This document shows positions 1 to 17,490 of a DNA stretch of 64,000 nucleotides, in pieces (the first letter of the stretch is position 1; every line of letters starts with the position of its first letter). A program made the translations under genes and the position numbers. Source of the stretch: Rebecca billardiae RCC1528 (taxonomy: Eukaryota > Protista > Haptophyta). Location of the stretch: assembly GCA_965240325.2 (NCBI GenBank), contig OZ251225.1, positions 3,844,001-3,908,000 of the forward strand. The letters are read 5' to 3'. The notes under the pieces are model-generated. The model saw nothing but the letters and a program-made list of their open reading frames with translations. It ran no database searches and had not been told where the DNA came from.

Positions 1-984
1 GCCGGGGCCGGCGCTCTCGCGCTCGCTCACGCTCGGGCGCGCACGGCGTGCACGGCTGCGCGCCGCCGTCTGAGACACGCGGGTCGCCCCGCGCGCTCCT
101 GCGCGCGCGTGGCACCGCAGGCAGCGCTGACCATGAGCCACCCATGGGCGCGCACTCCGGCCGCCGCTTCGAGCCGACGCAGATGCTCGACGCGACCGAG
201 GAGGGCTAGCCGCCGACGCCGTGAGACGACCCACAGGCCATGGGCCACGCCCGGCCGGAGCGCGCGGCCGGCCGTCGGCCACCACACGGCGGCACTCTAG
301 TCCGTCTTCGACGGACGGTGTGGCGAGAGCGCGCGTCGTCATCAGCGCGCGTCGTGCCGCGCGCGCGCGAGCCAGCCGGTTGATGGGCCAGGCTGGAAGT
401 GGAACACCCCGCCAGCGAGCCAGCGCAGCGCACTGTACTTGTAGCCAGTCAGCGCGAGGCTGCGTGTGAGGCACCCTGCGGGCCACAGTACGCGGCCCGA
501 CTCACTACTCACGGGAAGACTCCGAAGAGTGCTCAGTCGTACGGCCCGCGCTGTTAATATGATTATTATAGCGCAGAGAATAGAGTAGTCAGTAACGGTC
601 CGCGCGGGTCCGGTGGCCGGTCCGCCGGTCCGGCCTCCGGGTCTATATATAGTAGATAGTATATATCCCACGCGAGTAGTACGTGTAGTCAATAACGGCG
701 CGAGCGGTGACCATCATCAATAATCGATGACGACATCATGGCCAGTAGTATAGCGAGCTGATCAGGAGTCAGGACTAGTAGTAGTAGAACCTTGTCCGGG
801 ACCACGCCACGCGATTTGGCGACCTCGCGCAGTCGCGCGGCAATGGTGCCAGCTGGCTGGCGGTGCCAAAACGCCGGTCGTGATAATCAAGTAACGGCAT
901 TCGCCTGGAGCAGCAGCAGCGTGAAGGCCGTGAGGGCGGTGGCGCCGCGCGTGGGCCCACAGGCCGCAGCGCGCTGCAGCGCGC

Positions 985-3970
985 TCAGCGTCGGAGCTCG
1001 TCCACCGCGCTGTCTGGGACGATGGTGACGGGCACAATCTTGGGGAGCGAGCCGGTGGGGTGCTCGAGGTGGTCGAGGGAGATCTCGGTCGCGCCCTGCG
1101 GCCCGTAGTGCACGACCATGTCGCGCGTGTGCCCGTGGTACTGCTCGGAGAAGATCTGCATCTGGATCAGCACGCGCCCGTACACCACCTCGTCCGCCGC
1201 GTGGCCCTGGCGTCCCGCGGGCGCGCGCGGCGCGCAGCGGGCGGGGTCAGCGCGCGCGCGGCCGCCTCGGCGAACGCGCGCGCGGCCGCGCTCGGCGGTG
1301 CGCTCGGCGCGCGCGCACCGGCGGCAGGTCGACGGTGAAGATGATCGCGTCGTCGTTGTACAGGAACTGAATGTTGGTCGCCTGCGCCCAGATCTCGTGC
1401 AGGATGTCTGTCTGCGCGCGCTCGCCCGTGCGCACGCCGCGCGTGACCACGGCGCGCGGCGAGAGGAAGGGCTCGCCCTCGGGCGTGTAGCCGCGGATCT
1501 GAGCGTACAGCAGCACGTCCTCGGTGTGCGCCTTGCCCACCACGGTGATGAGCGCGCGCGCGCCCGGCCAGTGGATCTGCTGCGTGGGCACGATGAGCGT
1601 GCTGCTCGCGGCGCCCTCGCCGAACTCGAGCCTCGACCTGTCGTCCATCGGCATCACGCGCACCATCTCGTCCTCGAAGACGAGGATGAGGAACCAGCGG
1701 CCGAGCTTGGCCGAGCCGTTGCCGCTGAACTCGAAGCGCACGTGGTTGTACTGCTCCCAGCTGAAGCCCCTCAGCTGCTCGCGCAGCACGACGCCCTCCT
1801 TCGTGCCGCGCGGGATACCGTCGGGGTACACGGCGAGGCGCTCGGCCGGGTGCCCGTCGTGCGTGATCGTGCGCAGCGCCACGCTCGTCGTCGTGCCGCC
1901 CGACGGCCCCGTCGGCGCGATCACGTACGTGTACGCGAACTCGAGGACGCCAGAGCCAAAGTTGGGCGGCAGCGGCGGCGCGGGCGGCGTGGGCGGCGGG
2001 CTGGGCGAGCGCTCGGCGAGCGGCAGCGGCGGCGGCGCGGGCGGCGCGATGACGGGCGGCGGCGGCAGCGCGGGCGGCATGGCGGGCGGCGGCGACAGCC
2101 CGGCCGACAGCGCCTCCGCCGAGAAGGGCGTGAGCGAGCCGCCGAGCGTCTGCGGCCCGCCTCCCAGCTTGGGCCCGCGCGTGAGCGGCACCGGCACTGA
2201 GAGCGGGATCACGACGACGAGCACGACGACGAAGAAGAAGGCGAGGAAGAGGCCGAACGCGCGGCGCGCGGTGAAGCGCAGCTCGGGGCGCACGTCCTCG
2301 TCCTCGAGCCCCGGCACCGCGCCGAGCATGATCGCCGCGCCCTGGAAGATGGCGACGGCGCTCGCCGTCATCAGCCCGATGCCGAGGAAGCACGCGGCCG
2401 CGACCGAGTTGTGCTTGGTGCCGAGCGACTCGTCGAGGCCCGAGATGACGGCGGCGAGGAGGAGGAGGAGCGCGGTGACGCCGAGCATCGCGAGCACCAT
2501 CGACGTCGAGTCCGCGCTCAGCCTCCGCGCGCGCGCGCGCATCTCGCCCACCGTCTCCGCGCTGGACGCCGCGTGCGTGCGCCACGCGAACGCGCTGACG
2601 ACCAGCAGCAGCAGCGCAGACGTGCCCGCGGCGAACCAGCCGAGGACGGCCATGCCCGTGGCCCAGGTGGGGCCGGCGGTGCCGTCGGTGTACGGCGCGA
2701 CGCCCGTCTCGTCCGCCAGCCGCTGCGCGCGCAGCTCCGCCGCCGCCTTCGCGTTCTTCGCCGCGAACGCGAACGCGGCGACCGAGCCACCGACACACAG
2801 CAGGGCAAAGGCCGCGTACGCAAACACGCCCGCCCACGAGGGGCGCTTGGCGGCGGAGCGGTCGACGAGCGGGGCGCGCTCGTCGTCGGGCGGCTCGCGC
2901 ACGATCTCGAGGGACTGCACGACGAACAGGTCCGTCGCGAACGCGAGCGCGAGCACCGCGCCGATGTTGAACGCCGAGAAGAGCGCGTGGCCCTCGAACG
3001 TGAGCAGCGCGGCGCTCAGCGCGCCGCCGACGCACAGCCGCGCCACCTGCTGCACCTCGTCGAAGAGGCGCTGGCGCGCGGCGGCGAGGCGCGCGGGGTC
3101 GTCGACGGAGCGCGCCTGGTTGCGCGCGCGCACGATCGCGCCGAGCATCATCGACGACGCCGCGCTCGTCGTGCCCACGCCGAGCAGCACGAACGCGAGC
3201 ACGCCGACCACGCCCACGCCTGTGCGGTCCGCGCGCACCGATGCGGCGACCGACGCGGCGCTGCAGAGCGCGGCGAGGAGGGTGAGCGTGGCGACGACGG
3301 CGGTGGCCCAGAAGAGCGCACGCATCCGCCGCGCCACCGCCCGCGGCGCCGCCGCCAGCTCGGCCAGCGTGCTCCCGCTCTGGTACATCGCGTTGCGGAG
3401 CGCGTCCAGCCCCATCGAGAAGCCGACCAGCGCCAGACCGATCGCGCCGCCCGACGCCATGCGCACGTGGCGGTCGGCGTTCTGCGCCGAGCTGTGGACG
3501 AGCGTGACGACCGCGTCCAGCCCCGACGCCGCGGCGTACACCGCGAGGCACGTCGCCAGCACCGCCGCGATCGCCGCGATGTGCGCCTGCCGCAGCGTGA
3601 TGAAGTGCAGCTCGTCCTGCGCCGCGCGCGCGACGAGGCCGCCGTCCACCTTGTCGACGCGCAGGTTGTACAGCCGCCAGTCGGCCTCGCGCGCGTTCAT
3701 CAGCGTCAGCAGGTACGCCGCGCTGCCGACGGCGAGCATGCACCCGTCCGACGTGAGCACGAGCGACGACTGCAGCGCCGAGTTCTCCGGGCCGGTCGAC
3801 GACTCGCCGATGGCGGTGGTCATGACGAAGAGGGCGAGCGCGCCGCTCACGCACGCGCCGAGCGTCGCGACCATGCTCCACAGGAAGATGGGCGAGAAGG
3901 CCAGCGACGAGCTGTACACCTCCTCCTGCATGACCGCCATCTCCGCGGCCGCCGCGCGCCCCGGGGCCAC
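985..3970 (-). CDS. Multi-pass membrane protein (~11-12 predicted TM helices) with Pro-rich linker and C-terminal soluble domain; function unknown. Exons 3970-1319 and 1206-985
   Basis: Long ORF with repeated hydrophobic helices (e.g. AFGLFLAFFFVVVLVVVIP) and a PPPAMPPALPPPP linker. A phase-0 intron GTGCGC(1318)...CCAG(1207) joins it in frame to ORF 985-1188 (GHAADEVVYGRVLIQ...ELRR*). Confidence 0.75.
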
Positions 3971-4110
3971 CCGCTTGCGCGCCGAAGTGAGCGCTGTGAT
4001 GAGCGGAGGCGCCCGCCGAGGCGGCTCTGCCGGTCCGGGCGAAATGTGAGCGCTGTGCCGCCTGTCAAAAAGCCGGGCGGTAGTGCGCCGCCATCGTGCG
4101 GCCTGCGCTC

Positions 4111-4428
4111 ATGGACGTTGCGGCGGCGATCCTCTCCGTCGAGAAGGCGTCGTCGGTGTGCCCGTGCGCGCGCGGCCACGCGCGCGACGCTTACTGCCGT
4201 GCATGCAATGAGGGCGTCGACGTCTACGATTTCTGCTCGGCGAACCTGGTACCACCGGGCTGCCACAAGGTGTTGAAACGCCACATCCACACCGCCCTCA
4301 GCCTGGCCTCGAGCGCACCGGACACGGGGCCACCTGACTACCCCGTCCTCGGTGCCACACCACACAACGACAGCCTTTTCAATGACCTGAGCCCCATCTG
4401 GCGAGAGGCCATGGCCATCGAGGAGTAG
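4111..4428 (+). CDS. Possible small Cys/His-rich protein (~105 aa), weakly B-box-like
   Basis: ATG at 4111. Non-repetitive, protein-like sequence with CPC..GH..AYCRAC...FC...GCH...HIH. Divergent from the 3970 gene start. Confidence 0.35.
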   Translation: MDVAAAILSVEKASSVCPCARGHARDAYCRACNEGVDVYDFCSANLVPPGCHKVLKRHIHTALSLASSAPDTGPPDYPVLGATPHNDSLFNDLSPIWREAMAIEE

Positions 4429-4860
4429 GCGCGCCGGCGGCCGCAGGGCCGCGCTGAGGCGACACGCGGGCCCGTGGGCAGGGAGACTCCGAGCTGCCAG
4501 TCCGCGTCGGGCGTGCTGGAGGTCGCAGCGGCGCGGTCCAACGGGCGATCGCGCCACGCGACTGCTGCTTGATGCGGTGCCTACGCCCTCCAGTCGTCGC
4601 TGAGCCTGAGTCCCGAGGCCGAGTCCGGAGTCGCTCGTCGCCGAGTCGGCGCGGCGGCGCGGCGGCGCGGCAGGCGCCCGGCCGGGGCCCGCCGGGCCCG
4701 GGGCCGGAGGCGGAGCGGGAGGCCGCCACGGTTTCAACTAGCGAGTCAATGGTGAGTCAGTGACTGAACTGTGAAGACTGGCGTCACTAATGCTTAGAGC
4801 GACGACACAGTAGTGATAGATGCTGTCTAGCCGTACCTGCTGACGAGGAAGGGTCTGCTA

Positions 4861-5876
4861 TCATAGCATCTCCGCCGTCGTCCCGCCGCCATTCTTAGTG
4901 CCACGACCGCCCATGTCGGCACCGCCGCCACCGCTCGTAGCAGCGGTGCCACCGACGCTGCCGCTTGCAGCGGCAGCGGCCGCGAGCAGAGCCCTTGTTG
5001 TGAGGCGACCCTTCTCCGCATCCTCCGCAGCTTCGGCGGCGAGCGCAACCTGCCTCGCTTTGCGCTGCTGAGCGAGCTGCTCGTTCACCCCGCCTGGCAT
5101 GCCGTCCATGTCGAGCCGCGCCTCTGACCACTTGACGGCAAAGCGCGCGACGCCGATCCCGATGACGATCGCGAGGAACGTCCAATTCGACTTGGCCACG
5201 CCCTGCAGGTCGGTAAGCGTGATGATTTTGGGCAGCCAGTTGATGCCAATGAGCACCGCCGACATGTAGAAGAGCATCGTCATCGCCATCGCGTGCATGC
5301 GCACCCAGCGCAGCCCGAACATGTACCAGAGCCCGAGCGCCTGCAGCGTGAGCTGCATTGCGCCGATCACCGTCATCAGCAGTGCAGGGGAGAGTGGGAG
5401 TTCCGACTCGCCGTCGTAGAGGTAGATGACGCCCGTGACGACAGACACGAGGCCGCACACCATGGCAAGCCGCCCAATCCACTTGTGCGCATGGCGGAAG
5501 AAAGGTCCCTGTTCGTTCGCCATGGCCACATCAGCGCGCAGGTCCGCGCGGGTGAGCGGATGGTGGATGCGGAGGGGCGCCGGCTGCTGCGCACGCGCGT
5601 GCGCGCGGCGCGCACTTGGTCGGGCGTGTGGTACAGATTCCAAGCACAGGTGATTACAAACGTGAATGCCATCGTCATGTGTACGTCCATCGCCCACGAG
5701 CCCTTGCCCATGCGCGGGAAGCCGAGCCGCTGGATGAACACGACAACGAGCCCGACTCCCACCACCCATTGCGGCGAGAAGTTTCCGGCGAAGATCTTCA
5801 CGAATGTCACGCACCAGTGCTCTGGCTCGTCAAGATCCATGGCCAATGCTGCCTTCTTCGCGTACGCGCTCGACAT
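4861..5876 (-). CDS. DUF2306-like integral membrane protein with conserved His residues (possible heme ligands). Exons 5876-5616 and 5508-4861
   Basis: A phase-0 intron GTGCGC(5615)...ACAG(5509) joins MSSAYAKK...HTPDQ to GPFFRHAHKWIGRLAM. Motifs MDVHMTMAF, HKWIGR and RMHAMAM among ~6 TM helices match the DUF2306 pattern (H..; HRxLGR; HRxWM). Confidence 0.7.
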
Positions 5877-6289
5877 CGTGCCCACGCGCCGCGGCCGACA
5901 CGGCGCCGGCGTGCACAGGTCGAGGAAGGCGGCCTCCCTCGTTTCTCCGTCCACCGACTGCGCGCAAGAACCCGCTCAGGTTCGACCGCTCCATTGACGA
6001 AATTGGGGAATTCAAAACTTGCAGCTGCCTAGGGTGATGAAAGCCGCGGGGAATTCGTCCCGTGAACTGCTTATTGGCGGATCGTGGCGCGCAGATCAGC
6101 ACCGAACGCCGAATCGGGCGAATTCGGTCATTGATTGTTGTGGAAGGCGTTGTCAGCAAGCCAATGGGACACGACAAGGAGCGGGGAAATCATCGGCGAA
6201 CCGAGTCTTCGAAACCATCTCATCGGGTGCTGATCTCACTTTCAAAGGCTCCGACCTTCGCAAGCAGCGCAGCCGTCCAGTGGCCGACC

Positions 6290-9200
6290 ATGGCGAACCG
6301 AGTGGACCACGGCGGCGGGCTAGGAGGCAAGGCCTCGGACCGCGAGCCGCTGCTGAACGGGGGCGACAGCGCCGTGGAGCGCGCGGCCGCGTCGGCGCGC
6401 CGCGCGCTTCGCTGCCTCTCCGACCTCCGGCGCGCCCGAGCCGCGGCGAGCACGGCGCACGAGCACGCCCACGCCAGGATGTCCAAACGGATGAGCATCT
6501 TGCGCAGCGGCGACGCGCACCGCCACCCCCACCGCAACAAGGCCAGCCTCCACGTCACCTGGCGCACCGTCCTCGCCGGTGACGAGACGACCATCGAGGA
6601 CGCGCGCGCGCAGCAAATCGCGGAGGCGGACGACCGCGAGCGGCGGCAGCGGATCGAGGACCTGACCAAGCTGGCGCGTCTGCCGACGCTCACGATCGAG
6701 GAGCTGATGATCCCGCTGCGCCTCGCCTTCCCGTACCGGATCTCGCACTCGGTCGTGGCCGCCTGCCTCGACATCATCGGCGACCTGTTCGAGCTCGGCT
6801 GGGTGATCAAGATCGTGCGCGAGCAGCCGAGCGCGAAGGAGCTGATGGCTCGCGAGCTGCAGCGCAAGCAGATGGCCGAGGAGGCGGCAGAGGGCGGCAC
6901 CGCGGCCGACGGCGCGGCCGTCGCGGTGGCGGACATGAAGGAGGCGGACGACTCGGTGTACACGATCATGCACGGGCTGCGCGACGTCGGCACCGTCGTC
7001 TCGCTGCACTTTGCGCGCGTGCTGTTTGTGTTCTGGGGCGACCGCACGCTGTGGACGCTCGTGCAGGTGGTGCGCTGCCTGCGCGTGCGCCAGCTCGTCT
7101 CGTACGTGTCGCAGATCAACAACGACCTGACGATGAACGTGAAGCTGCTCGCGGCGTACAAGTTCCTCCTCGTGCTCATCTCGGTGCCGCACTGGATCGC
7201 GTGCTTCTGGTGGGCGCTGCCGGCGGAGTGGACGGAGCCCGCGCTCGAGCTGCCGTCGTGGCCGGCGCAGGTGCCGCTCGTCACGCACAACCCGGGGCTC
7301 GCGCCGCACGCCGCGCCCTCGGAGTGGTACAGCTACCTGATGGCGCTGTACATGGCGTGGATGGGCCTCACGAGCATGGGGTACGGCACGCTCGTCATCG
7401 CCACGCAGCAGGAGGTGATCTTCGCCGCGCTGGTCGCGATGATCCAGATGGTGTTCTACGCGTTCGTGCTCGGCACGCTCTTCCACTACCTCGTGCGCAC
7501 CGACGAGAACACCGTGCACTTCAACGAGCTGATGAAGGCGGTGGACGAGTACGTGGGCGCGCGCAAGCTGCCGCCCGCGCTCGCGTCCAAGATCCGCTCG
7601 CACTACGCCTTCCAGCACCGCAAGCAGGCGGCGGGCACGCAGCGCATCGTCGCGCAGATGCCGCTGTCGATGCGCACCGAGGTGGCGGTCGCGCAGTACG
7701 CGCGCCAGATGCACGCGACCTGGGCGTTCTGGGGGTGCACCTCGCAGTTCCTCTCGTACATCGCGCTCTTCCTGCGCGAGCGCAACATGATGCCGTCCGA
7801 GACGCTCTTCAAGCGCGGCGACGTGGGCGCCGAGCTGCTGTGGTGCGTGGGCGGCTCGCTGCACGTGACCAAGGGCGACGCGCACATCAGCACCGTCCGC
7901 TCCGACATCGGCGCGGGCGCGATCGTGGGCGAGGTCGCGTTCTTCGTGGGCATCCAGCAGCCGTACACGGTGACGGCCACCTCGAAGGGCGAGGTGACGC
8001 TGATCGTGCTCTCGATGGGCGCCTTCGACGAGATCATCGGCTCGTACCCCGAGCAGACGGACCAGATCACGCAGAACCTGCTGCGCAAGTACGGCCTCGA
8101 CAAGAACGGCGCCGACGTGCCCGGCGGCGGCCTCGCCGAGCAGATGGACGAGGACGAGCTGAAGGAGTTCCTCGAGCTGCGCGAGGCCATCCGCACCGCC
8201 ATCATCGAGCGCAACGAGGAGATGTTCGCGCAGATGGCGGGCGCGGTGCACTCGGGCGACGTCGAGACGGTGCGCTCGCTCACGGCGCGCGGCTTTGAGC
8301 TGAGCTCGGGCTCGTACGACCTGCGCACGCCGCTGCACCTCGCCGCGCTCGAGGGGCACCGGCTGGTCGCCAAGGTGCTGTGCGAGCTCGGCGCGGACGT
8401 GTCGCAGATCGACCGCTTCGGCCACGCGCCGCTCAACGACGCGCTCGACGCGCGGCACGGCGCGGTGGCGGACGAGCTCGGGCGGTACGGCGCGCAGCTG
8501 CGGTGCGCGCGGCCGGCGGAGAAGCTGCACGCGGCGGCAAAGGCGGGCGACATGGAGCTGATGACGATGGCGGTGCGCCACGGCATCGACATCAACGCGC
8601 GCTCGTACGACGGGCGCACCGCGCTGCACGTCGCCGCGGCCGAGGGCAACTCGCGCGTCGCCGAGTTCCTCGTGACCAACATGGCGGACGTGCACGCGCG
8701 CGACCGCTGGGCGCACTCGCCGCTCGACGACGCGATCCAGCACAACCACCCGCTGCTCGCGCAGATGCTCGTGCGCTCCTCCGCCTCCTCCGACCCGGGC
8801 ACGATGGCCGAGCTGCTGCGCCGCGCCGCGGGCGAGGGCGACGTCGAGCGCCTCGGCTTCGTGCTGCAGATGGGCTGCAAGGTCAACGAGGCCGACTACG
8901 ACCGGCGCACCGCGCTGCACTACGCGGTCGCGGCCGGCTCGGTCTCCGCGACGCACGCGCTCGTCGCCGCGCTCGCCGACGTCAACCTCGCCGACCGCTG
9001 GCTGCAGCCGCCGCTCGTGCAGGCGCTGGACACGTCGCCGCAGATCGCCGCGCTGCTCGCGCGCGCGTGCGGCGCCTCGCTGCCCGACGGCGCGAGCGGC
9101 GCGGAGCGCGCGCGGCTGCAGGGCGCGCTGGACGCGTGCGCCGCCCTCGACATGTACGAGCTCAACAGGCGCATCTCCGCGCGCGCCGAGCAGCGCGCGG

Positions 9201-12200
9201 CCGACACGGAGCTGCTGCTCGTGAAGGCGCGCGAGGTGGAGGTGTCGGTGAACGGGCTCGCCGACGCGATGGCGGGCGTGGCGCGCGCGCACCGCTCGCT
9301 CTTCCGCACCCTCGAGCGCTGGGCCGACATCTGGATCGGCGAGTACGGCGAGGGCGACGGCGAGGGCTCGGACGACGACTCGTCGCTCGGCTCCGACTCG
9401 GACGAGGGCGGCGGCGGCGCGCGGCACGCGGGGTGGCCGGGCGGCGGCGGCGCGGACGGCGGCGGGTCCGGCGTGGCGAGCGCCTCCAAGCAGTTCCTCA
9501 GGCTCGTGCTGCAGCTGCCGCACGCGGAGAGCGGGCTGGTCCGGCTGAGCGCGCTCTTCCGAGAGCGGCTGCCCGCCGACGCAAACTGCGCGATGCCCGA
9601 CGCCGTCCGGCGCGCCGAGGAGGAGCGCACGCTGCGGCACATCCTGACCGCCGTGCTGGGCGTGGACGCGCACACGGCGGACGCGGTGCTCGCCGAGGTC
9701 TACGACGAGCTGCGCGCGCTGCTCGGCGCCGCCGCGCCGAGCCCGGTCGGGCCGCGCGCCGGCGCGCTCGAGGCGCCCCTGCGCACCGCCGCCGACCGGC
9801 CCGCCGCGCCGCCGCCGCCGCAGCGCGCGGCGGGCGAGCCGGAGGCGGCGGCGAGCGACGCCGCCGCCTCGACGCCGGCGTCGGATGGCTCGGCCGCGGG
9901 CGAGGGCAGCTCGCTGCGCTCGGACGCGCAGCAGGACGGCTCGGCGCAGAGCGGCTCGTTTGGCCGCGCGGCCGCGGCCGCGGCCGCGGACAGCGCGCGC
10001 CAGCAGCGCGGCGGCTCGCCCGCAGGCGGCTCGTTCGAGCACGGCTCGTTCCGGAACGACAAGGTGATCGACGTGCTGCGCCGCGGCTCGACGACGGGCA
10101 CGACGCTCGTCGACCTCACGCGCCACCTGCACCGCGGCTCGATCGGCGCGGGCAGCAGCTCGTTCCGCGGCGGCGCGGCGCCGCGCGCCGCCGCGCGGCC
10201 GCCACCCGCCACCGTGGCCGCCGCCGTGGCCGCCGCGCGGGCGGCTGGTGCGGCCAAGCTCTCGCCGCGGCTGCAGCCCCTGGAGCAGGCCGCCGCCGCC
10301 GCCTCCGACGACGACGCGTCCCACCCCGTGTACCTCTCCGACCTCGGCCACGTGGTGCTCTTCTGCTCGAGCACGCTGCTGGACGTGCTCGCGCAGCGCT
10401 CGCTCGCGCGCTCGGGCAGCGCCACGCCCGGCGGGTGGGCGGGCCGCTCGGGCACGACCACGCCCGGCGTGCCCGGCACGACGCGCAGCAGCTTCGTCAG
10501 CCAGGGCGGCGGGAGGAGCTGGCGCGAGGACGGCGGCTCGTGGGCCGCGTCCGTCTCCTCGCCCCGCTCGACGCCGCGCCCCAAGCGGCTCTCCACCGCG
10601 ATCGGCCGCGTGCTCCGCCGCTCGGTGCAGCTCTCGTTTGGCGGCGGCGGCGGCGCGCGGCGCGGGGACGAGGGCTTGCAGGGCGACGCCGACGCCACGG
10701 CGAGCACGGAGCACAGCGAGAGCGGGAGCCGGCTGCGCCTGACGCTCGAGCAGCTGGCCGACGCGACGGGCGACGACGGCGGCGGCCGCGCGCACGAGGC
10801 GCTGCGGCGCGACGTGGAGGGCTCGGCGCGCATCATCCTCGCCCTCTTCCGCGTGTTCGACGCGGACGACAGCGGCGTCGTGCACATGCGCGACGTGCGC
10901 AAGCTGCAGCGCGAGCTGGGCGAGTTCGGCTCGGAGGAGATCCGCTCGCTGGTGGCGCACCTGATGGACGCGTCGCGCGCGCTGCAGCCGCCGGCCGAGC
11001 GCGCGCCCGCGCCTGCGCTCGATGGGCGCCGGCTCTCGGCCGGCGCGGCGCCGCCGGGCGGTGCGCGCTCGGAGAACCCGTTCGGACTCTCCGAGGCGGT
11101 GCAGGCGCGGCGGAAGCGCTCGCTGAAGCACGGGCCGCGCACGCACCGCTCGCCGAGTGGCGCGAGCTCGACGCCGCCGCGCCTCTCCCTCGACGCGGCG
11201 CTGGGCGTCAGTCTGGGCGCTGCCGCGCTCGCGGAGGGCGCGGAGGGCGCGGCCTCCTCCTCTGAGGAGGAGGTGGACGAGGCCGAGCTGCTCGCGGACG
11301 CGGAGCTGTTTGCAGATGCGGACGACGCGGCCGAGCCTCTGCTTGGCGCGGCCGAGGCGATGGCGGGCGGGCTCGAGCCAGCCTCTGCCGAGCCGGGCGC
11401 GGCGGCGTGCGCGGGCGCGGCGGACTCTGCGCTCGCGCAGCTGCGCGGGCGCGGGCGCGGCGCGGCGCGCGCCGCGGACGAGGCTCGCAAGCCGTCCTTC
11501 CTGTCGGAGGAGCAGCTCGCCGGCCCGACCGCCGAGCAGGAGGCGCTGTACGCCTCGCTCGACGAGGCAGGCACGATCGCGCACGGCGGCGCGGGCGGCG
11601 CCGCCGACGGCCTCGGCCTGCGCGGCCGCGCGGCCGCCGTGCGCTCGATGACCAAGGTGCAGTTCTTCGTGGGCGTCTCCTCCTGGATCCTCGTCTCGGC
11701 GAGCGAGGTGGCGCACCCAGACGAGGAGGAGGACGCGGTGGCGCGGGTGCGGCGGGAGGCGAAGGCGGCGCAGGATGCGCGCGCCTCGCGCGTGTCCGCC
11801 GCGGAGAAGGCGATGTCCGAGCAGGAGGCGGCGACGCGGCGGTCGCGCAAGCTCGAGGCGCACCTCACGCTCGCGATGGAGAGCGCCGCCGCCTTCTCGC
11901 TGCTGGCGGACAACATCCAGCACCGCGTGGACAAGGGGAGGGTCGGCGCGGCCGAGCGCGTGGAGAGCGGCGCGCTGCTCAAGCTGGTCTCGCACGCCGT
12001 CGCCATCCCCGCCTCCGCGTGCGCAGAGACCGTCGAGGCGTGGTGCGACAAGCGGCTCGGGCTCTCACTCGAGAAGGAGGGCGCAGGCGGCGCAGAGCAA
12101 CGCGGCGGCGGCGCGCCGCAGCCGCCCGAGGAGGCGCCGCTCGACGACGGCTCCAACTTTGGCGGCGACGTGGCGGGCGCGGAGGCGGCGGCGGCGGCGG

Positions 12201-15200
12201 CGGTGCCGACGACGTGGCAAGTGCTCGTCGACGCGCTGCGCGACGAGGCGACCGCGCTGCGCCTCGTCGAGAGCGGCGTCGACAGCGTCGACGGCGGCGG
12301 CGGCGGCGGAGCGCGCAAGCGCGGCGGGCCGGGCAGCGGCCTGCTCGCCGCCGTCGGGCTCGGCGGCGGTGGCGGCGGTGGCGCTCGGACCGGCTTGGAC
12401 GGCAGCGGCGGCGGCGGCGGCGGCGCCGCCGCAGAGCACGGCGCCGAGCACGGCGGCGCGCCCGACTCTGCGTGGTACGTGATGAGCCGGCGCTCCGCGG
12501 TGTGCGTGCTCGTGCACCGCGCGTTCCTCGGCCTCGTGGTCTGGGACGCGCTCGTCGGGCCGATGTCGCTCGCGTACATCGACTGCTTCGCGCGGATGCC
12601 GTGGCTGTTCTACGTGAACTTTGGGATCGACGCGTGCTACCTCGTGCGCATCGGCCTGCAGTTCTTCACCTCCTTCGTCAACGAGAAGTCCGTCGAGGTG
12701 TTCGCCCCCGCGGAGATCTGGCGGCACTACCTGCAGCGCGACTTTGCGGGCGACGTGTTCGCGTGCTGGCCGCACGACAAGCTGGCGTGGCTGCTCGGCG
12801 CGGGCCCTTTCGTGCAGCTCTCGCTGCGGCTGCTGCGGTACGTGAACGTGCGGTACGTGCTGCGCGCGTGGGGCGCGTGGAAGCGCGGCCTCTCCCAGGC
12901 CGACTTTGCGAGCGGGCTAGTGCGCAACATTGCGCCGCTGCTCTGCACCATGCACTACTCCGCGTGCGTGGCCAACGTGCTCGGCTACTCCGACCTCGCG
13001 CAGCGGCTGGCGTACACGACGTGGGCGGACACGTACGACCGCGAGCGCGACGCGCTGCTGCGCGGCAGCTCGAGCGAGTACGGCAGCCCCGAGGCCGAGC
13101 TCACCCATCACTACCTGACGGCGGTCTTCCTGGTGCTCTCGCTCATCACCGGGCTGGGGCTCGCGCAGCTGCCCGCCAACTACGCGGAGGCGCTCGCGTT
13201 CGTGCTGCTCGGCGTGACGAACATGACGATCTACGCGTGGGCGGTCGGCGGGATCTCCGGGCTGGTGATGAAGCAGGACGACGAGATCGTGGGCAAGCGC
13301 GCGCAGCTCGAGCTCGTCACCGCGTACGTGCGGCACATCCACGCGCCCGCCGAGCTGAAGGAGCGGATGGTGCGCTTTTTCCAGCACCGGCTGCAGACCA
13401 CCTCGCTCTCGTCCGTCGACGCGGAGCAGATCTACACGGGGCTGCCCGTGCCGCTGCAGATGGAGGTGGCGACGCACACCAACCGCGCGCTCGTCACCGG
13501 CTGCCTGCTGCTGCGCGGCTGCGCCGCCGGCTTCCTCGACCGGCTCTCGGCCGCGCTGCGCGAGCGCGAGCTCGACGCGGAGGCGGTGGTCTTCCGCGCG
13601 GGCGAGGCGTGCAAGGAGCTGCTGCTCATCGCGTCGGGCGTGGTCGAGCTGCTCGACGAGGGCGCGGAGGGCGCGGAGGAGGGCGGCGAGGGCGGGCTCG
13701 AGCTGATGGGGCCGGGCGACACGCTCGGCGAGGTGCCCTTCATCTTCTCGATCCGGCACTTCAAGACGGCGCGCGTGGGGCAGGAGAAGAAGGCCGTGAC
13801 GTTCAGCCTCTCGCAGGAGCAGTTCAGGGAGCTGCTCAAGGCGTTCCCCTCGCAGGAGGACGTGCTGATGGACAACGCGATGCGCAGGCACGACGGTGCG
13901 CGCGCCGCGCCCGCGCGCCGCGCGCGACCGACCGTGCCGCCCACGCGCGCGCCGCGCGCGCGTGCGCCCCCCCGAGCGAGCAGGCATGTCGGGCGCTAGG
14001 TCGGTCCGCTCGGGCAAGTCAGCCGCGTCCAAGCGCGCCGCGTCCGAGGCGGGCAGGTCGGAGATGGCCAAGTCGGGCGCGGGCGGCGCCAAGTCGGAGG
14101 TGGACGCCGGGCCGGTGACGGGCGTGGACGCGCTGCACAAGGTGCGCCCCACGCGCCGTGCCTCGCGCCGGGCCTCGCGAGCGCGCGCGCGTGCGTGGCC
14201 GAGCGCGGCCCCGCCGCCTCGACGGCTCACGGCCGGATGCGCCCCGCCCCGCCCCGCCCTGCCCTGCCACCGCCCGCCCCCTCGCGCGGCTCGGCGCCGT
14301 GCCGCTGCCCGCGCGCAGATCCTGACCGAGGCGAAGCGCAAGCGCGAGGAGCTGCTCCACTCGCGGCTGTGCACCGCGTGCGCCAAGGGCGACCTGGAGA
14401 AGGTGCGCCGGCTGCTCTCGGGCCGCGCGTCCGACGTGGACCATGGCGACTTTGGCGGCCGGCGCGTGCTGCACCTGGCCGCGTGCGGCGGCGAGCCGCG
14501 CGTGATCGAGCTGCTGCTGGCGCAGAAGGCGGACGTCAACGTGGAGGACGCGCACGGCTGCACGCCGCTCGACGCCGCGCTGATGGCCGACCAGGAGGCC
14601 GCCGCGGCGCTGCTCGCCAGGCACGGCGGCCGGCCGGGCTCGCGCGACGTCTCCGACCACGTGTGCACCGCGGCCGGCGACGCGGACGGCGGGCGCGACC
14701 TCGCGCGGCTCTGCCAGTACGGCGGGAACGTGAACGCGACGTCGAGCGAGGGGCGCACCGCGCTGCACGTCGCCGCGTCCGAGGGGCGCGCCGCCAACGT
14801 GCGCACGCTCCTCGAGCTGCGCGCGGACATCAACGCGCGCGACGCGCGCGGCTCGACGCCGCTGCAGGACGCGCTGCTCAGCCGTCAGGACGAGGTGTGC
14901 GCGCTGCTGCTGCAGAGCGGCGCCGCGCTCGGCGAGCTCGACGTGGCCAAGGCGCTGAACACGGCCGCGGCGGCGAACGACACGGCCCACCTCGGCCGGC
15001 TGCTCCGCTTCCGCTGCGACGTCAACGCGCAGGACGGCGTCGGCCGCTGCGCGCTGCACCTCGCGAGCGCGTCGCGCTGCGTGAACGCGGCCAGCCTGCT
15101 GCTCGACGCGGAGGGCGTGGCCGTGAACGCAGAGGACGCGCACGGCAACACCGCGCTGGACGACGCGCTGCGCGAGGGGTGCGCGGAGCAGCGCGTGCTC

Positions 15201-15927
15201 GTCGCGCTGCTCGAGTCGCGCGGCGCCAGGCCGGGCTCGCACGCCAAGCGCGCGCAGCTCGTCGAGCGCCACTCGGACGTGGAGGAGCGCCGAGAGCGGC
15301 AGATGGCCGACACGATCCAAGCGCGCGACGCGACGCTCGGCCACGCGACCGAGCTCTCGGCCTGGCTCGCTGAGGAGCGCGCCGCGGTCTCGGAGTTCAG
15401 GGCGCAGCTCGACGCGGCGGTGCGGCTGCAGCGCGAGCACGGCGCCGTGCTCGCCGACGAGCTGCCCGAGCTGTGGGCGCAGGTGTACGCGTACGCCGAG
15501 GGCTTCTTCGACTGGCGCGACGACGCCGCGTCGGACGTGCGGCGCGTCGTCGAGCGCATGGCCGCCGACACGACCGACTTTGCGCTCATCTCCGCGCACA
15601 AGCTGCTCGCCAAGGTGCGCCGCGCGCCGCCCAGCGCGGCCGCGCACGCGGCGCAGCATCGCGCGCGCGCCGCGAGGCTGCTGGCCGATCCCACCACCAC
15701 CACCGCGCGAGCGTCCCACTGCGCGCGTGTGCGCGCACGCGGCCCGTCGCCCGCCTTGGCGCCCACCCGTCGACGCTGCGGCCGCTGCGCAGATGGACGA
15801 CATGCTGGAGATCGCGAGGAACGAGGCCAAGCCGCTCGAGCGGCTGTACGAGGTCACGTTCCGCAAACCCTACAAGTCATCGCACAGCGGCCCGGACGGC
15901 AAGCCGCCTTGGAACCCGAATGCGTGA
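6290..15927 (+). CDS. Giant tandem two-repeat Shaker/AKT-SKOR-like cation channel: 2x(6TM pore + C-linker + cNMP-binding-homology domain + ankyrin repeats) with central EF-hand, ~3,064 aa. Exons 6290-13895, 13984-14141, 14319-15614, 15793-15927
   Basis: Repeat 1: S4 VVRCLRVRQL, pore LTSMGYGT (7370-7390), cNBD GEVAFFVGIQQPYTV, ankyrins (YDLRTPLHLAA, YDGRTALHVAA, YDRRTALHYAV). EF loop DADDSGVVHMRD (~10859-10894). Repeat 2: S4 LRLLRYVNVR, pore LITGLGLA, cNBD GEVPFIFSIRHFKTARV, ankyrins (GRRVLHLAA, GRTALHVAA, GRCALHLAS). Three GTGCGC..CAG introns restore one continuous frame. Confidence 0.9.
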
Positions 15928-16060
15928 GCATTTGCGCTCGGTGCAGCGCTGGGAGAGCGAGACGCCAGGGAGTCGGCGGAGGCTTCATTGACACTACGAC
16001 AGCAGTGTCGTCATCGGATCGAGCTATAGATCGATCGTCGTCAGCGCTAAGCATCAGCGC

Positions 16061-17490
16061 AGCACCTTGAATGACCCCAGTGGGCGGAAATGGCCATATC
16101 TCCCGGAGATTGCGTTTACTGACGTACGTCAGTAAAGTTTCGTCGGGATTTTCAGCAATTTCATTGGAGGAGGGTGCCTCACTCTATTGTCCAAACTTGC
16201 ATTTTCGGGATGTGAAGCTGTAAGTGTTTCGCCTTGCGGAGTAGCGCAGCCGCCAATCCGTCCAATGGGAAGCCAGCTCGGGCTTCGCTCAATGAAAAAT
16301 GATCACATCGGCTCCCGCGAGCCCCAATAGGAAATAGATGCTCGCTCCGTTCCACTTCGTCGGTATCTCGCCGTCTCGTGGTGGGCGAGGGGCGGAGCTG
16401 AGTGGTTGGGGCTGCGGCGCGGACTGCGATGCTGGGCTGCTGACGTTCTCCGCGCGGGATATCTGAGGGGCACGCGAGCTGTATGTAGGGCACGCCTTGC
16501 AAACAATCTCCCCGCTGTACGTGCAGGTCATGCTAGCGTCCTCCGCGCCAAAAAAACCTGCTTGTTCTTGCGCGAGGCCCGAGTCCGCGGCACGGTCGCT
16601 GCTCGCCGCAAGCTGGCACGCGTCAGCGTCTACACATTCACGATTCGGTGGTCATCGTGCGCCTGAGGACGGGGGCGATCTACTGAGTGCGCTGCTAGAT
16701 GAGCAGGCCCGCGTAAGGTTAGATCACCCTGCTCCTCACGCCTTGCGCGCACCTTGGGTTGCTTCCGTCACGCCGTTGAGGCGCTTCACGTCGCACGGGT
16801 CGGCGTAAGCTGTGTGTGTGATGCAAGCAGACGTCTTCCAAGCCTGGCTTGTACCCGATGGGAGAGCATACTTCTATCGCCTTCAGCCACCACCTTCTCC
16901 GGCGTTCGACGCCCACACTACATGCGACCACAGCCATACGCAGCTCGTCGGGACTCGTCTCCGTTAGCTTGTCGATGTGCAAACGCCAAGGCCTGTGACA
17001 CGCAGGGAAGACTGATTCGCCATGGCATTTGTGCACTGCGTGAAGCATTGACACCCGCGCACGTTCGCCAGGTAGATTTGCGGGAGCAGAGCGTGCTTTT
17101 CTGCAAGGAATCGCACACGTATCACAGAAGTTCAGCAGTCGCGGGCTCGGACTGAAGATCTCTGCACCGTCGCCTGGCCGTGAGTGACAGGAACAGGCGA
17201 GGAGCTCCCACGGTGCTGGCGCACAACATGCCGTGACAGCGGGGGGCACACACATGGCGCGTGCGCTGACACAACCGCGCGGACGACCGGGCTAGGCGCC
17301 ACTGATCGGCCGCCCTCGTGCAAGGCACCGGCGGACTTCGCGGCCGGAACGCCATCGGGACAGCCGTCCCTCGTTTCGGCCGCCAGATAGTCTTTCGCCT
17401 TTTTCAAAACTCTAAACATTGACTGGCCAAGTAACTCTGAGATTCGCAATCGTGCGGCCAAAAACGGGGCTGGGGGGCAGTCAAGGTGCT
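16061..17490. mobile_element. Putative degenerate TIR-bounded insertion (DNA transposon relic)
   Basis: Left end AGCACCTTGAATGACCCCAG vs reverse complement of right end AGCACCTTGACTGCCCCCCAG (10-bp perfect, then imperfect). The interior is visibly lower in GC than the flanking genes and has only broken ORFs. No TSD found. Confidence 0.4.

Follow-up and report, generated by a model that had tools for sequence, protein, structure and literature searches.

Within a 64,000-nucleotide (nt) stretch of the genome of the haptophyte Rebecca billardiae RCC1528 (contig OZ251225.1, positions 3,844,001 to 3,908,000; the whole stretch is referred to as the window), the plus-strand locus 6290-15927 raises the question whether one gene encodes two complete channel units of the Shaker/AKT type in a single chain and, if so, what kind of pore these units would form. 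A preliminary description of the locus had proposed a protein of 3,064 amino acids (aa) in which a six-transmembrane pore domain (6TM), a C-linker, a cyclic nucleotide-binding domain (CNBD) as well as ankyrin repeats occur twice, the first module with a K+-type selectivity filter and the second with a non-canonical one. Taken as a whole, the results are best explained by a single gene belonging to an ancient tandem family, the product of which would assemble into a pseudo-tetramer with alternating modules and relaxed K+ selectivity, a reading to which a probability of roughly 0.55 is assigned.

The coding sequence can be deduced from two overlapping open reading frames (ORFs), the first of which (6062..13999, +) carries on in a changed frame as the second (13896..16070, +). 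By comparison with full-length relatives, three introns were placed, each of them starting with GTGCGC and ending with CAG, with lengths of 88-178 nt and a guanine plus cytosine (GC) content of 0.83-0.90. Their removal restores the alignment with orthologues over every junction and results in a spliced coding sequence of 9195 nt ending at 15927, so that the product length and the coordinates given in the preliminary description are reproduced exactly. This product is collinear with the orthologues P0001 (Diacronema lutheri KFE25_007711, a single gene in the NCBI annotation), P0002 and P0003, with the blocks of the linker between the modules included.

In the 64-kb window with its GC content of 65-83%, however, ORF length alone is weak evidence for a gene, because the antisense strand of the same locus holds an ORF of 1891 aa (6320..11995, -). 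Such very long spurious frames lend some weight to an alternative in which two neighbouring genes, or a gene and its dying duplicate, are read through since stop codons are rare at 75% GC. This is contradicted by the periodicity of GC over codon positions, with values of 0.88-1.00 at third positions (GC3) and 0.32-0.72 at second positions (GC2) in one unbroken frame over all 2535 codons of exon 1, the linker included, and with no stretch of intergenic composition; the flanks of the gene have a GC content of 0.58-0.60. Moreover, the linker blocks are kept in frame across species, the transmembrane (TM) domain, C-linker and CNBD of module 2 are together 53-60% identical to those of the orthologues, the same architecture is found in distant algae, and the junction between the modules is spanned by two transcript-type contigs from relatives. 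The first of these, L004 (JGI 3300016954, 8395 nt), bears a single ORF (83-8197) encoding both modules, has short untranslated ends and contains none of the introns of the window, and on the second, L005 (JGI 3300016846), ankyrin domain 1 is found together with the linker and module 2. Both JGI sets are taken as MMETSP transcriptome assemblies, because the sequence of P0017 is identical under JGI/IMG and MMETSP and because P0016, encoded on L005, clusters at an identity of at least 90% with an MMETSP transcript. Separate transcripts for the two modules, which had been named beforehand as the outcome speaking against a tandem channel, were thus not encountered, as the contigs of relatives join them. 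Read-through of unrelated or decaying genes is hence very improbable and effectively already refuted, and by all these sequence criteria the locus is one intact nuclear gene, from a Pavlovales-like haptophyte, for one chain with two modules.

The other long ORFs at 8380-11265 (+) and 9700-12579 (-), out of the channel frame or antisense to it, are not genes; spurious frames of this kind arise because GC3 is near 1.0 in the real frame. A separate mRNA for module 2 was also considered, since the MMETSP protein P0003 is labelled complete and starts inside the linker, but was rejected, as the matching contig L005 has ankyrin domain 1 directly upstream in another frame; the label is explained by a frameshift, or by a break in the assembly of this contig, near nt 760 (the frame changes at nt ~755-776). 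In the NCBI model of P0001, S5 of module 1 is incomplete and ankyrin domain 2 is missing altogether, and comparison with the window and P0002 suggests that introns were mis-called.

The domain content of the two modules was recovered as proposed in the preliminary description. Pfam finds Ion_trans_2 (aa 347-402), cNMP_binding (498-585) and Ank (678-893) in the first third of the protein, and Ion_trans (aa 2080-2302), a second stretch of cNMP_binding and the ankyrin repeats of exon 3 in the last. From S4/S5 over pore, C-linker and CNBD-homology domain to the ankyrin repeats, module 1 aligns without break to GORK, SKOR and AKT1 (phmmer, E 1e-57 to 5e-57), and its S1-S3 region is divergent, with a polar S1 and a 45-aa acidic/Ala-rich insertion between S2 and S3. 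In the AlphaFold2 (AF2) model of this module, residues 18-304 superpose on S1-S6 of GORK (9khe_A; Z 16.8, 4.2 Å, 244 residues), and the corresponding values for hERG (8zyn_A) are Z 15.9 and 3.0 Å. The AF2 model of module 2, with a predicted local distance difference test score (pLDDT) of 71, has HCN1, GORK and AKT1 as best Foldseek matches (E 5e-20), and by sequence this module is nearest to hERG (4.5e-22) and GORK. Hence, in Pfam, PDB sequence and structure matches alike, S1-S6 with a P-loop precede a C-linker and a CNBD fold in each module, as characteristic of the 6TM channels of the CNBD superfamily. Both have an Arg-bearing S4, and the topology is consistent, with six helices per module and all soluble domains on the cytosolic side. 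Module 2 is conserved among orthologues with 64-73% identity in C-linker and CNBD and 43-49% in the TM domain. Between modules 1 and 2, identity amounts to about 23%, and no homology was detected between the regions following the first and the second ankyrin domain. The 3064-aa protein combines two channel units of the CNBD superfamily that diverged in ancient times.

Features of the tandem channel gene of R. billardiae (positions refer to the window; PBC, phosphate-binding cassette).
Feature	Position	Strand	Remarks
Exon 1	6290..13895	+	N-terminus, module 1, linker and module 2 to the end of the CNBD-like domain; donor ACG/GTGCGC
Module 1 TM domain, S1-S6 (aa 118-400)	6641..7489	+	AF2 model; S1 polar, 3 Arg in S4, insertion between S2 and S3 acidic/Ala-rich
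Filter 1	7370..7390	+	TSMGYGT, K+-type GYG
Module 1 C-linker and CNBD-homology domain	7490..8089	+	Pfam cNMP_binding 5e-19; PBC GEVAFFVGIQQPYTV, no Arg
Ankyrin domain 1	8207..9079	+	Pfam Ank_2/Ank/Ank_4; continuous alignment to GORK/SKOR
Inter-module linker (about 1120 aa)	9080..12439	+	mostly low-complexity, with conserved blocks
EF-hand-like block (aa 1516-1570)	10835..10999	+	loop DADDSGVVHMRD; Pfam EF-hand_6 E 0.13 (weak)
Module 2 TM domain, S1-S6 (aa 2051-2325)	12440..13264	+	Pfam Ion_trans 8e-10
Filter 2	13145..13165	+	ITGLGLA; HMMER aligns TGLGLA to hERG TSVGFG
Module 2 C-linker and CNBD-homology domain	13265..13894	+	second cNMP_binding stretch; PBC GEVPFIFSIRHFKTARV, no Arg
Intron 1	13896-13983		
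Exon 2	13984..14141	+	Ser/Lys-rich spacer 3' of the second CNBD; junctions restore HDG-MSGARSVRSGKS and ALHK-ILTEAKRKRE
Intron 2	14142-14318		
Exon 3	14319..15614	+	ankyrin domain 2 plus the greater part of the conserved C-terminal domain; Pfam Ank_2 2e-34; tblastn P0002 14316-15620
Ankyrin domain 2	14322..15239	+	Pfam; 54-55% identity to P0002 and P0003
Intron 3	15615-15792		
Exon 4	15793..15927	+	conserved C-terminal tail (AKPLERLYEVTFRKP) and stop; tblastn 15790-15876 with P0001, P0002 and P0003

For identifying proteins of the same build, a profile of module 2 was searched against 1.84 billion representative proteins, yielding 613 matches at E<=1e-30, the best 150 of which were classified with hidden Markov models (HMMs) of both modules and fall into three architectures. 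In the first, a module-1-type unit is followed by a linker of 800-1100 aa and a module-2-type unit. About 15 divergent relatives have this long-linker arrangement, and all those scanned show Ion_trans, cNMP and Ank twice, with ankyrin repeats after each CNBD. They come from Diacronema (four paralogues), MMETSP transcripts, Rhodelphis marinus (three proteins), Cymbomonas tetramitiformis and Bryopsis (family members besides the window protein include P0002, P0017, P0025, P0034, P0038, P0051, P0085 and P0089). The other two architectures are short-linker two-repeat proteins, one of them from a bicosoecid, with GYGD in both repeats, and four-repeat animal proteins resembling CNGK (Anneissia, Lingula) with GYGD in every repeat. 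The architecture predicted in the preliminary description is consequently real, but the gene is no one-off, as it belongs to a widespread long-linker family.

In a tree of 71 modules, in which one plant sequence was included and the published dinoflagellate and oomycete tandems were not, one clade (Shimodaira-Hasegawa-like approximate likelihood ratio test, SH-aLRT, 100) unites the first modules of the long-linker tandems and another (99) their second modules, with congruent branching within both. Short-linker two-repeat proteins, the bicosoecid one among them, and four-repeat proteins fall apart from the window modules, and the single plant sequence is nested with neither module but sits on a long branch in an open polytomy. 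The separate and congruent clades argue for an ancient fusion, the halves of which have co-diverged since, and on this phylogenetic evidence the long-linker tandem family is old and present in haptophytes, green algae and Rhodelphis.

A deviating relative is P0006, a protein of 2567 aa encoded by ORF 385-8088 of the full-length transcript-type contig L008 (JGI 3300016954, Ga0186516_100041) and probably stemming from the same organism as L004, both being from the same sample. In this protein, which looks like a sensor-channel fusion, four PAS domains and an RGS domain are joined to only one channel unit of the module 2 type; the unit bears ankyrin repeats and has STLGLAQLP as its filter. By contrast, a complete protein consisting of module 1 only was not found, but only fragments, in word-based searches of limited reach. 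P0009, a candidate for such a stand-alone protein, was rejected, as it continues into the next ORF of its contig.

Both selectivity filters lie where the preliminary description had located them, and a T-x-G-[YF]-G motif is found in module 1 only. Compared with the T-x-x-G-[YF]-G pattern, filter 2 retains the Thr and the first Gly, while Leu replaces the aromatic residue and Ala the second Gly. A reading of TGLGLA in which its GLG would correspond to the GLG filter of K2P channels was rejected, since HMMER pairs G-L-A and not G-L-G with G-F-G of hERG and the orthologues have ALG at the earlier position. In the window, TGLGLA is followed by QLP, and the corresponding sequences SALGVA in P0001, TALGIA in P0002 and TALGVA in P0003 by Q[LV]P, giving [ST][AG]LG[LIV]AQ[LV]P as consensus of the orthologue group. 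The adjoining S6/C-linker sequence YAWxVGGISGxVMKQDDEIVGKRAQLELV is almost invariant. Simple decay of filter 2, the other outcome named beforehand as contrary to a functional second module, is not what is seen: its form is kept in the orthologues and the neighbouring S6/C-linker hardly varies.

Outside the orthologue group, filter 2 differs strongly among paralogous subfamilies, with TRTGQT in P0005/P0008, TTVG-GMPP in P0013 (presumably resembling CNG-type loops) and NLSTG in P0004, and in P0018 and P0007 the loop is shortened. This variability, combined with the near-invariance of the S6/C-linker, would be in line with module 2 serving as a built-in silent or regulatory pseudo-subunit like AtKC1 or CNGB, which provides an S5-S6 scaffold, a voltage sensor and cytosolic docking surfaces, with a P-loop no longer coordinating ions and with selectivity set by module 1. 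However, among orthologues the conservation of filter 2 roughly equals that of the remaining TM domain, two inert strands in a four-strand filter are doubtful from general knowledge of K+ channels, and P0006 has the same filter in its sole pore module, so that such a purely regulatory role for module 2 appears distinctly unlikely.

The favoured assembly is a dimer with alternating filters, because, as a rule, tandem channels that have been characterised all form one shared pore and the arrangement matches the AKT1-AtKC1 entry 7wm1 of the PDB, which contains two chains of each. Two chains would form a pseudo-tetramer with the modules in the order 1-2-1-2, as in K2P channels, TPCs and the 2:2 complex of AKT1 and AtKC1. 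A pore with two K+-type and two non-K+-type filter strands would probably have relaxed K+ selectivity, and gating would proceed via voltage, by the Arg-bearing S4 of both modules, and via the cytosolic ankyrin/linker apparatus. An alternating C2 dimer also fits the reduction from C4 to C2 symmetry recently reported for structures of SKOR and GORK (PMC10313817, PMC12742848), on which the doubling of modules may bear in turn.

Several observations weigh against this assembly or its consequences for selectivity. With about 1100 aa, the linker far exceeds the length needed for co-assembly in one pore. The K+-type strand is not strictly conserved, as the module 1 filter among relatives reads GYG, GYA or GYS, and the shortened P-loop of module 2 in the paralogues P0018 and P0007 is apparently degenerate. 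Furthermore, the AF2 model of module 1 is of low confidence (pLDDT 60), and P0006, the filter 2 of which is near-identical, exemplifies a module-2-type pore unit without a covalently attached module 1.

Some of these points agree with a complex of four chains, in which the module 1 units would form a K+-type tetrameric pore and the module 2 units a second, non-K+ pore, both held together by the linkers as a twin channel. The linker with its own conserved blocks would be long enough for this, the low identity between the modules is in accordance with it, the single-module protein P0006 must tetramerise without a fused module 1, and, as is well established, K+ coordination by a GYG filter normally depends on four strands that are equivalent. 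On the other hand, the repeats of every characterised tandem channel (K2P, TPC, TOK, CNGK and Nav/Cav; general knowledge, with a summary in PMC7576140) contribute to one common pore, and the congruent co-divergence of the modules since their fusion fits an obligate partnership. The failure to find a complete module-1-only protein points in the same direction, although weakly, because the word-based searches were limited. Two separate pores are therefore regarded as rather unlikely, and the alternating dimer, put forward with altered selectivity in the preliminary description and plausible, is retained as the favoured assembly.

The linker is collinear with that of the orthologues at 27-37% identity and contains blocks of strong conservation, such as aa 1343-1374 and aa 1516-1570. 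The latter block is weakly similar to EF-hands in Pfam, and a comparison with the EF-hand pairs of module-2-type relatives resulted in a match by hhalign (85%, E 6e-6). Canonical ligand positions are present in the loop of the window protein and absent from the orthologues; Ca2+ binding by this loop is thus possible, but would not be a constant of the family. A second EF-hand just 5' of module 2 (aa 1855-1995) was rejected at an hhalign probability of 0.1%. Genuine EF-hand pairs are located directly upstream of module-2-type units in P0056 (aa 525-588), P0059 (555-620), P0084 (646-678) and P0085 (1139-1191), these carriers being Bryopsis and other relatives. This placement suggests that a Ca2+-sensing element ancestrally lay in front of the second channel unit. 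In plant TPC1, EF-hands are likewise situated in the cytosolic linker between the repeats. A more specific version of the alternating dimer can be put forward only tentatively, namely a C2-symmetric hybrid filter, in which two GYG strands and two non-K+ (CNG-like) strands would alternate, in a voltage-gated channel that would be non-selective or Ca2+-permeable and tuned by the EF-hand-like sensor in the linker. If true, this selectivity filter would be without a characterised counterpart.

Regarding ligands of the CNBD-homology domains, the Arg of the phosphate-binding cassette is missing in both modules. In module 1, the cassette reads QQPYTV versus AQPYTI in the plant Shaker channel P0015, with Tyr replacing Arg and the QPYT motif common to both. 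In module 2, the cassette HFKTA has Lys in place of Arg in the window protein, where relatives have Thr, His, Asn, Ala or Gln, and instead of the Glu of the cassette, relatives have Gly, Asp or Thr. As both cassettes lack the key Arg, gating of the channel by cyclic nucleotides is improbable. The label CNBD of the preliminary description should consequently read CNBD-homology domain, given that neither cassette has the Arg and that the Glu is lost as well in module 2 of orthologues.

Tandem channels with CNBDs as such are not new. In dinoflagellates and oomycetes, both of the stramenopile-alveolate-rhizarian (SAR) lineages, two-repeat CNBD channels have been described from sequence (Pozdnyakov et al., 2020, Sci Rep, PMC7576140), with TVGYG filters or close variants in both repeats and without mention of ankyrin. 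This precedent, as well as the breadth of the family, had been missed in the preliminary comparison, which was drawn to plant AKT/SKOR channels, animal CNGK channels and TPCs. The literature search, with most subscription journals outside its scope, returned only this study on tandem two-repeat CNBD channels and nothing on the long-linker ankyrin family. Common to both groups are two 6TM-CNBD repeats per chain, first and second repeats in separate, co-diverging clades and a record consisting of sequences alone. Unlike those tandems, the window family has ankyrin repeats after each CNBD, its linker measures 800-1100 aa and includes an EF-hand-like block, and its second filter is non-canonical, in the window protein ITGLGLA instead of a TVGYG-like sequence.

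With the plant Shaker channels AKT1, SKOR and GORK, module 1 shares the GYG filter, the QPYT cassette in place of the Arg binding cyclic nucleotides and the ankyrin repeats that follow, and according to the models both modules would adopt the same non-swapped 6TM fold. The plant channels, however, bear one module per chain and form tetramers, and their C-terminal KHA domain (PF11834), present in P0015, gave no Pfam match in either piece of the window protein. Furthermore, module 1 belongs to a clade of its own with the first modules of other tandems, in the tree with its one plant sequence. AKT1-AtKC1 and CNGA-CNGB are comparable in combining two kinds of subunits with different P-loops in one pore, one modulating the other; those partners are encoded by separate genes and combine in variable stoichiometry, whereas a 1:1 ratio would be fixed here by covalent fusion. 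The inferred dimer of two-repeat chains, forming a pseudo-tetramer with non-identical filters, resembles TPC1 and K2P channels, but the likeness is architectural only, as CNBDs and ankyrin repeats are absent from TPCs and K2Ps, which possess short linkers and are of unrelated origin. Covalently linked 6TM-CNBD repeats are also known from CNGK of animals and choanoflagellates, which differs in having four repeats with GYGD in each, in lacking ankyrin and in forming a separate clade. What is new is accordingly the combination, in one tandem CNBD channel, of ankyrin repeats with a giant linker and with filters that do not match.

Tandem-repeat channels such as K2P, TPC and Nav/Cav show how a pore gains asymmetry. 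In the family described here, a 1:1 pairing of a K+-type with a non-K+ P-loop is fixed and has been maintained in haptophytes, green algae and Rhodelphis alike. It would provide a natural hybrid filter, and the expressed protein would reveal the selectivity of a 2+2 filter. In addition, the build of 6TM, CNBD-homology domain and ankyrin repeats of plant AKT/SKOR/GORK reaches, in doubled form, well beyond land plants. For marine haptophytes, in which few channels are characterised, the gene is a candidate for a channel involved in excitability or ion homeostasis.

Among the database matches, P0005 (2899 aa, from the metagenome contigs L001-L003) was considered as an orthologue from a compact genome, but turned out to be a paralogue, the aligned parts of which are identical to D. 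lutheri KFE25_001874 (P0008). The difference from the latter lies in an in-frame intron immediately in front of the pore helix of module 2, which a prokaryote-style gene call has read through, adding 33 spurious residues. Metagenome and Logan contigs hence carry nuclear DNA of Diacronema. Finally, the GTGCGC...CAG pattern of the three introns is a useful splice signature for annotating the R. billardiae genome.

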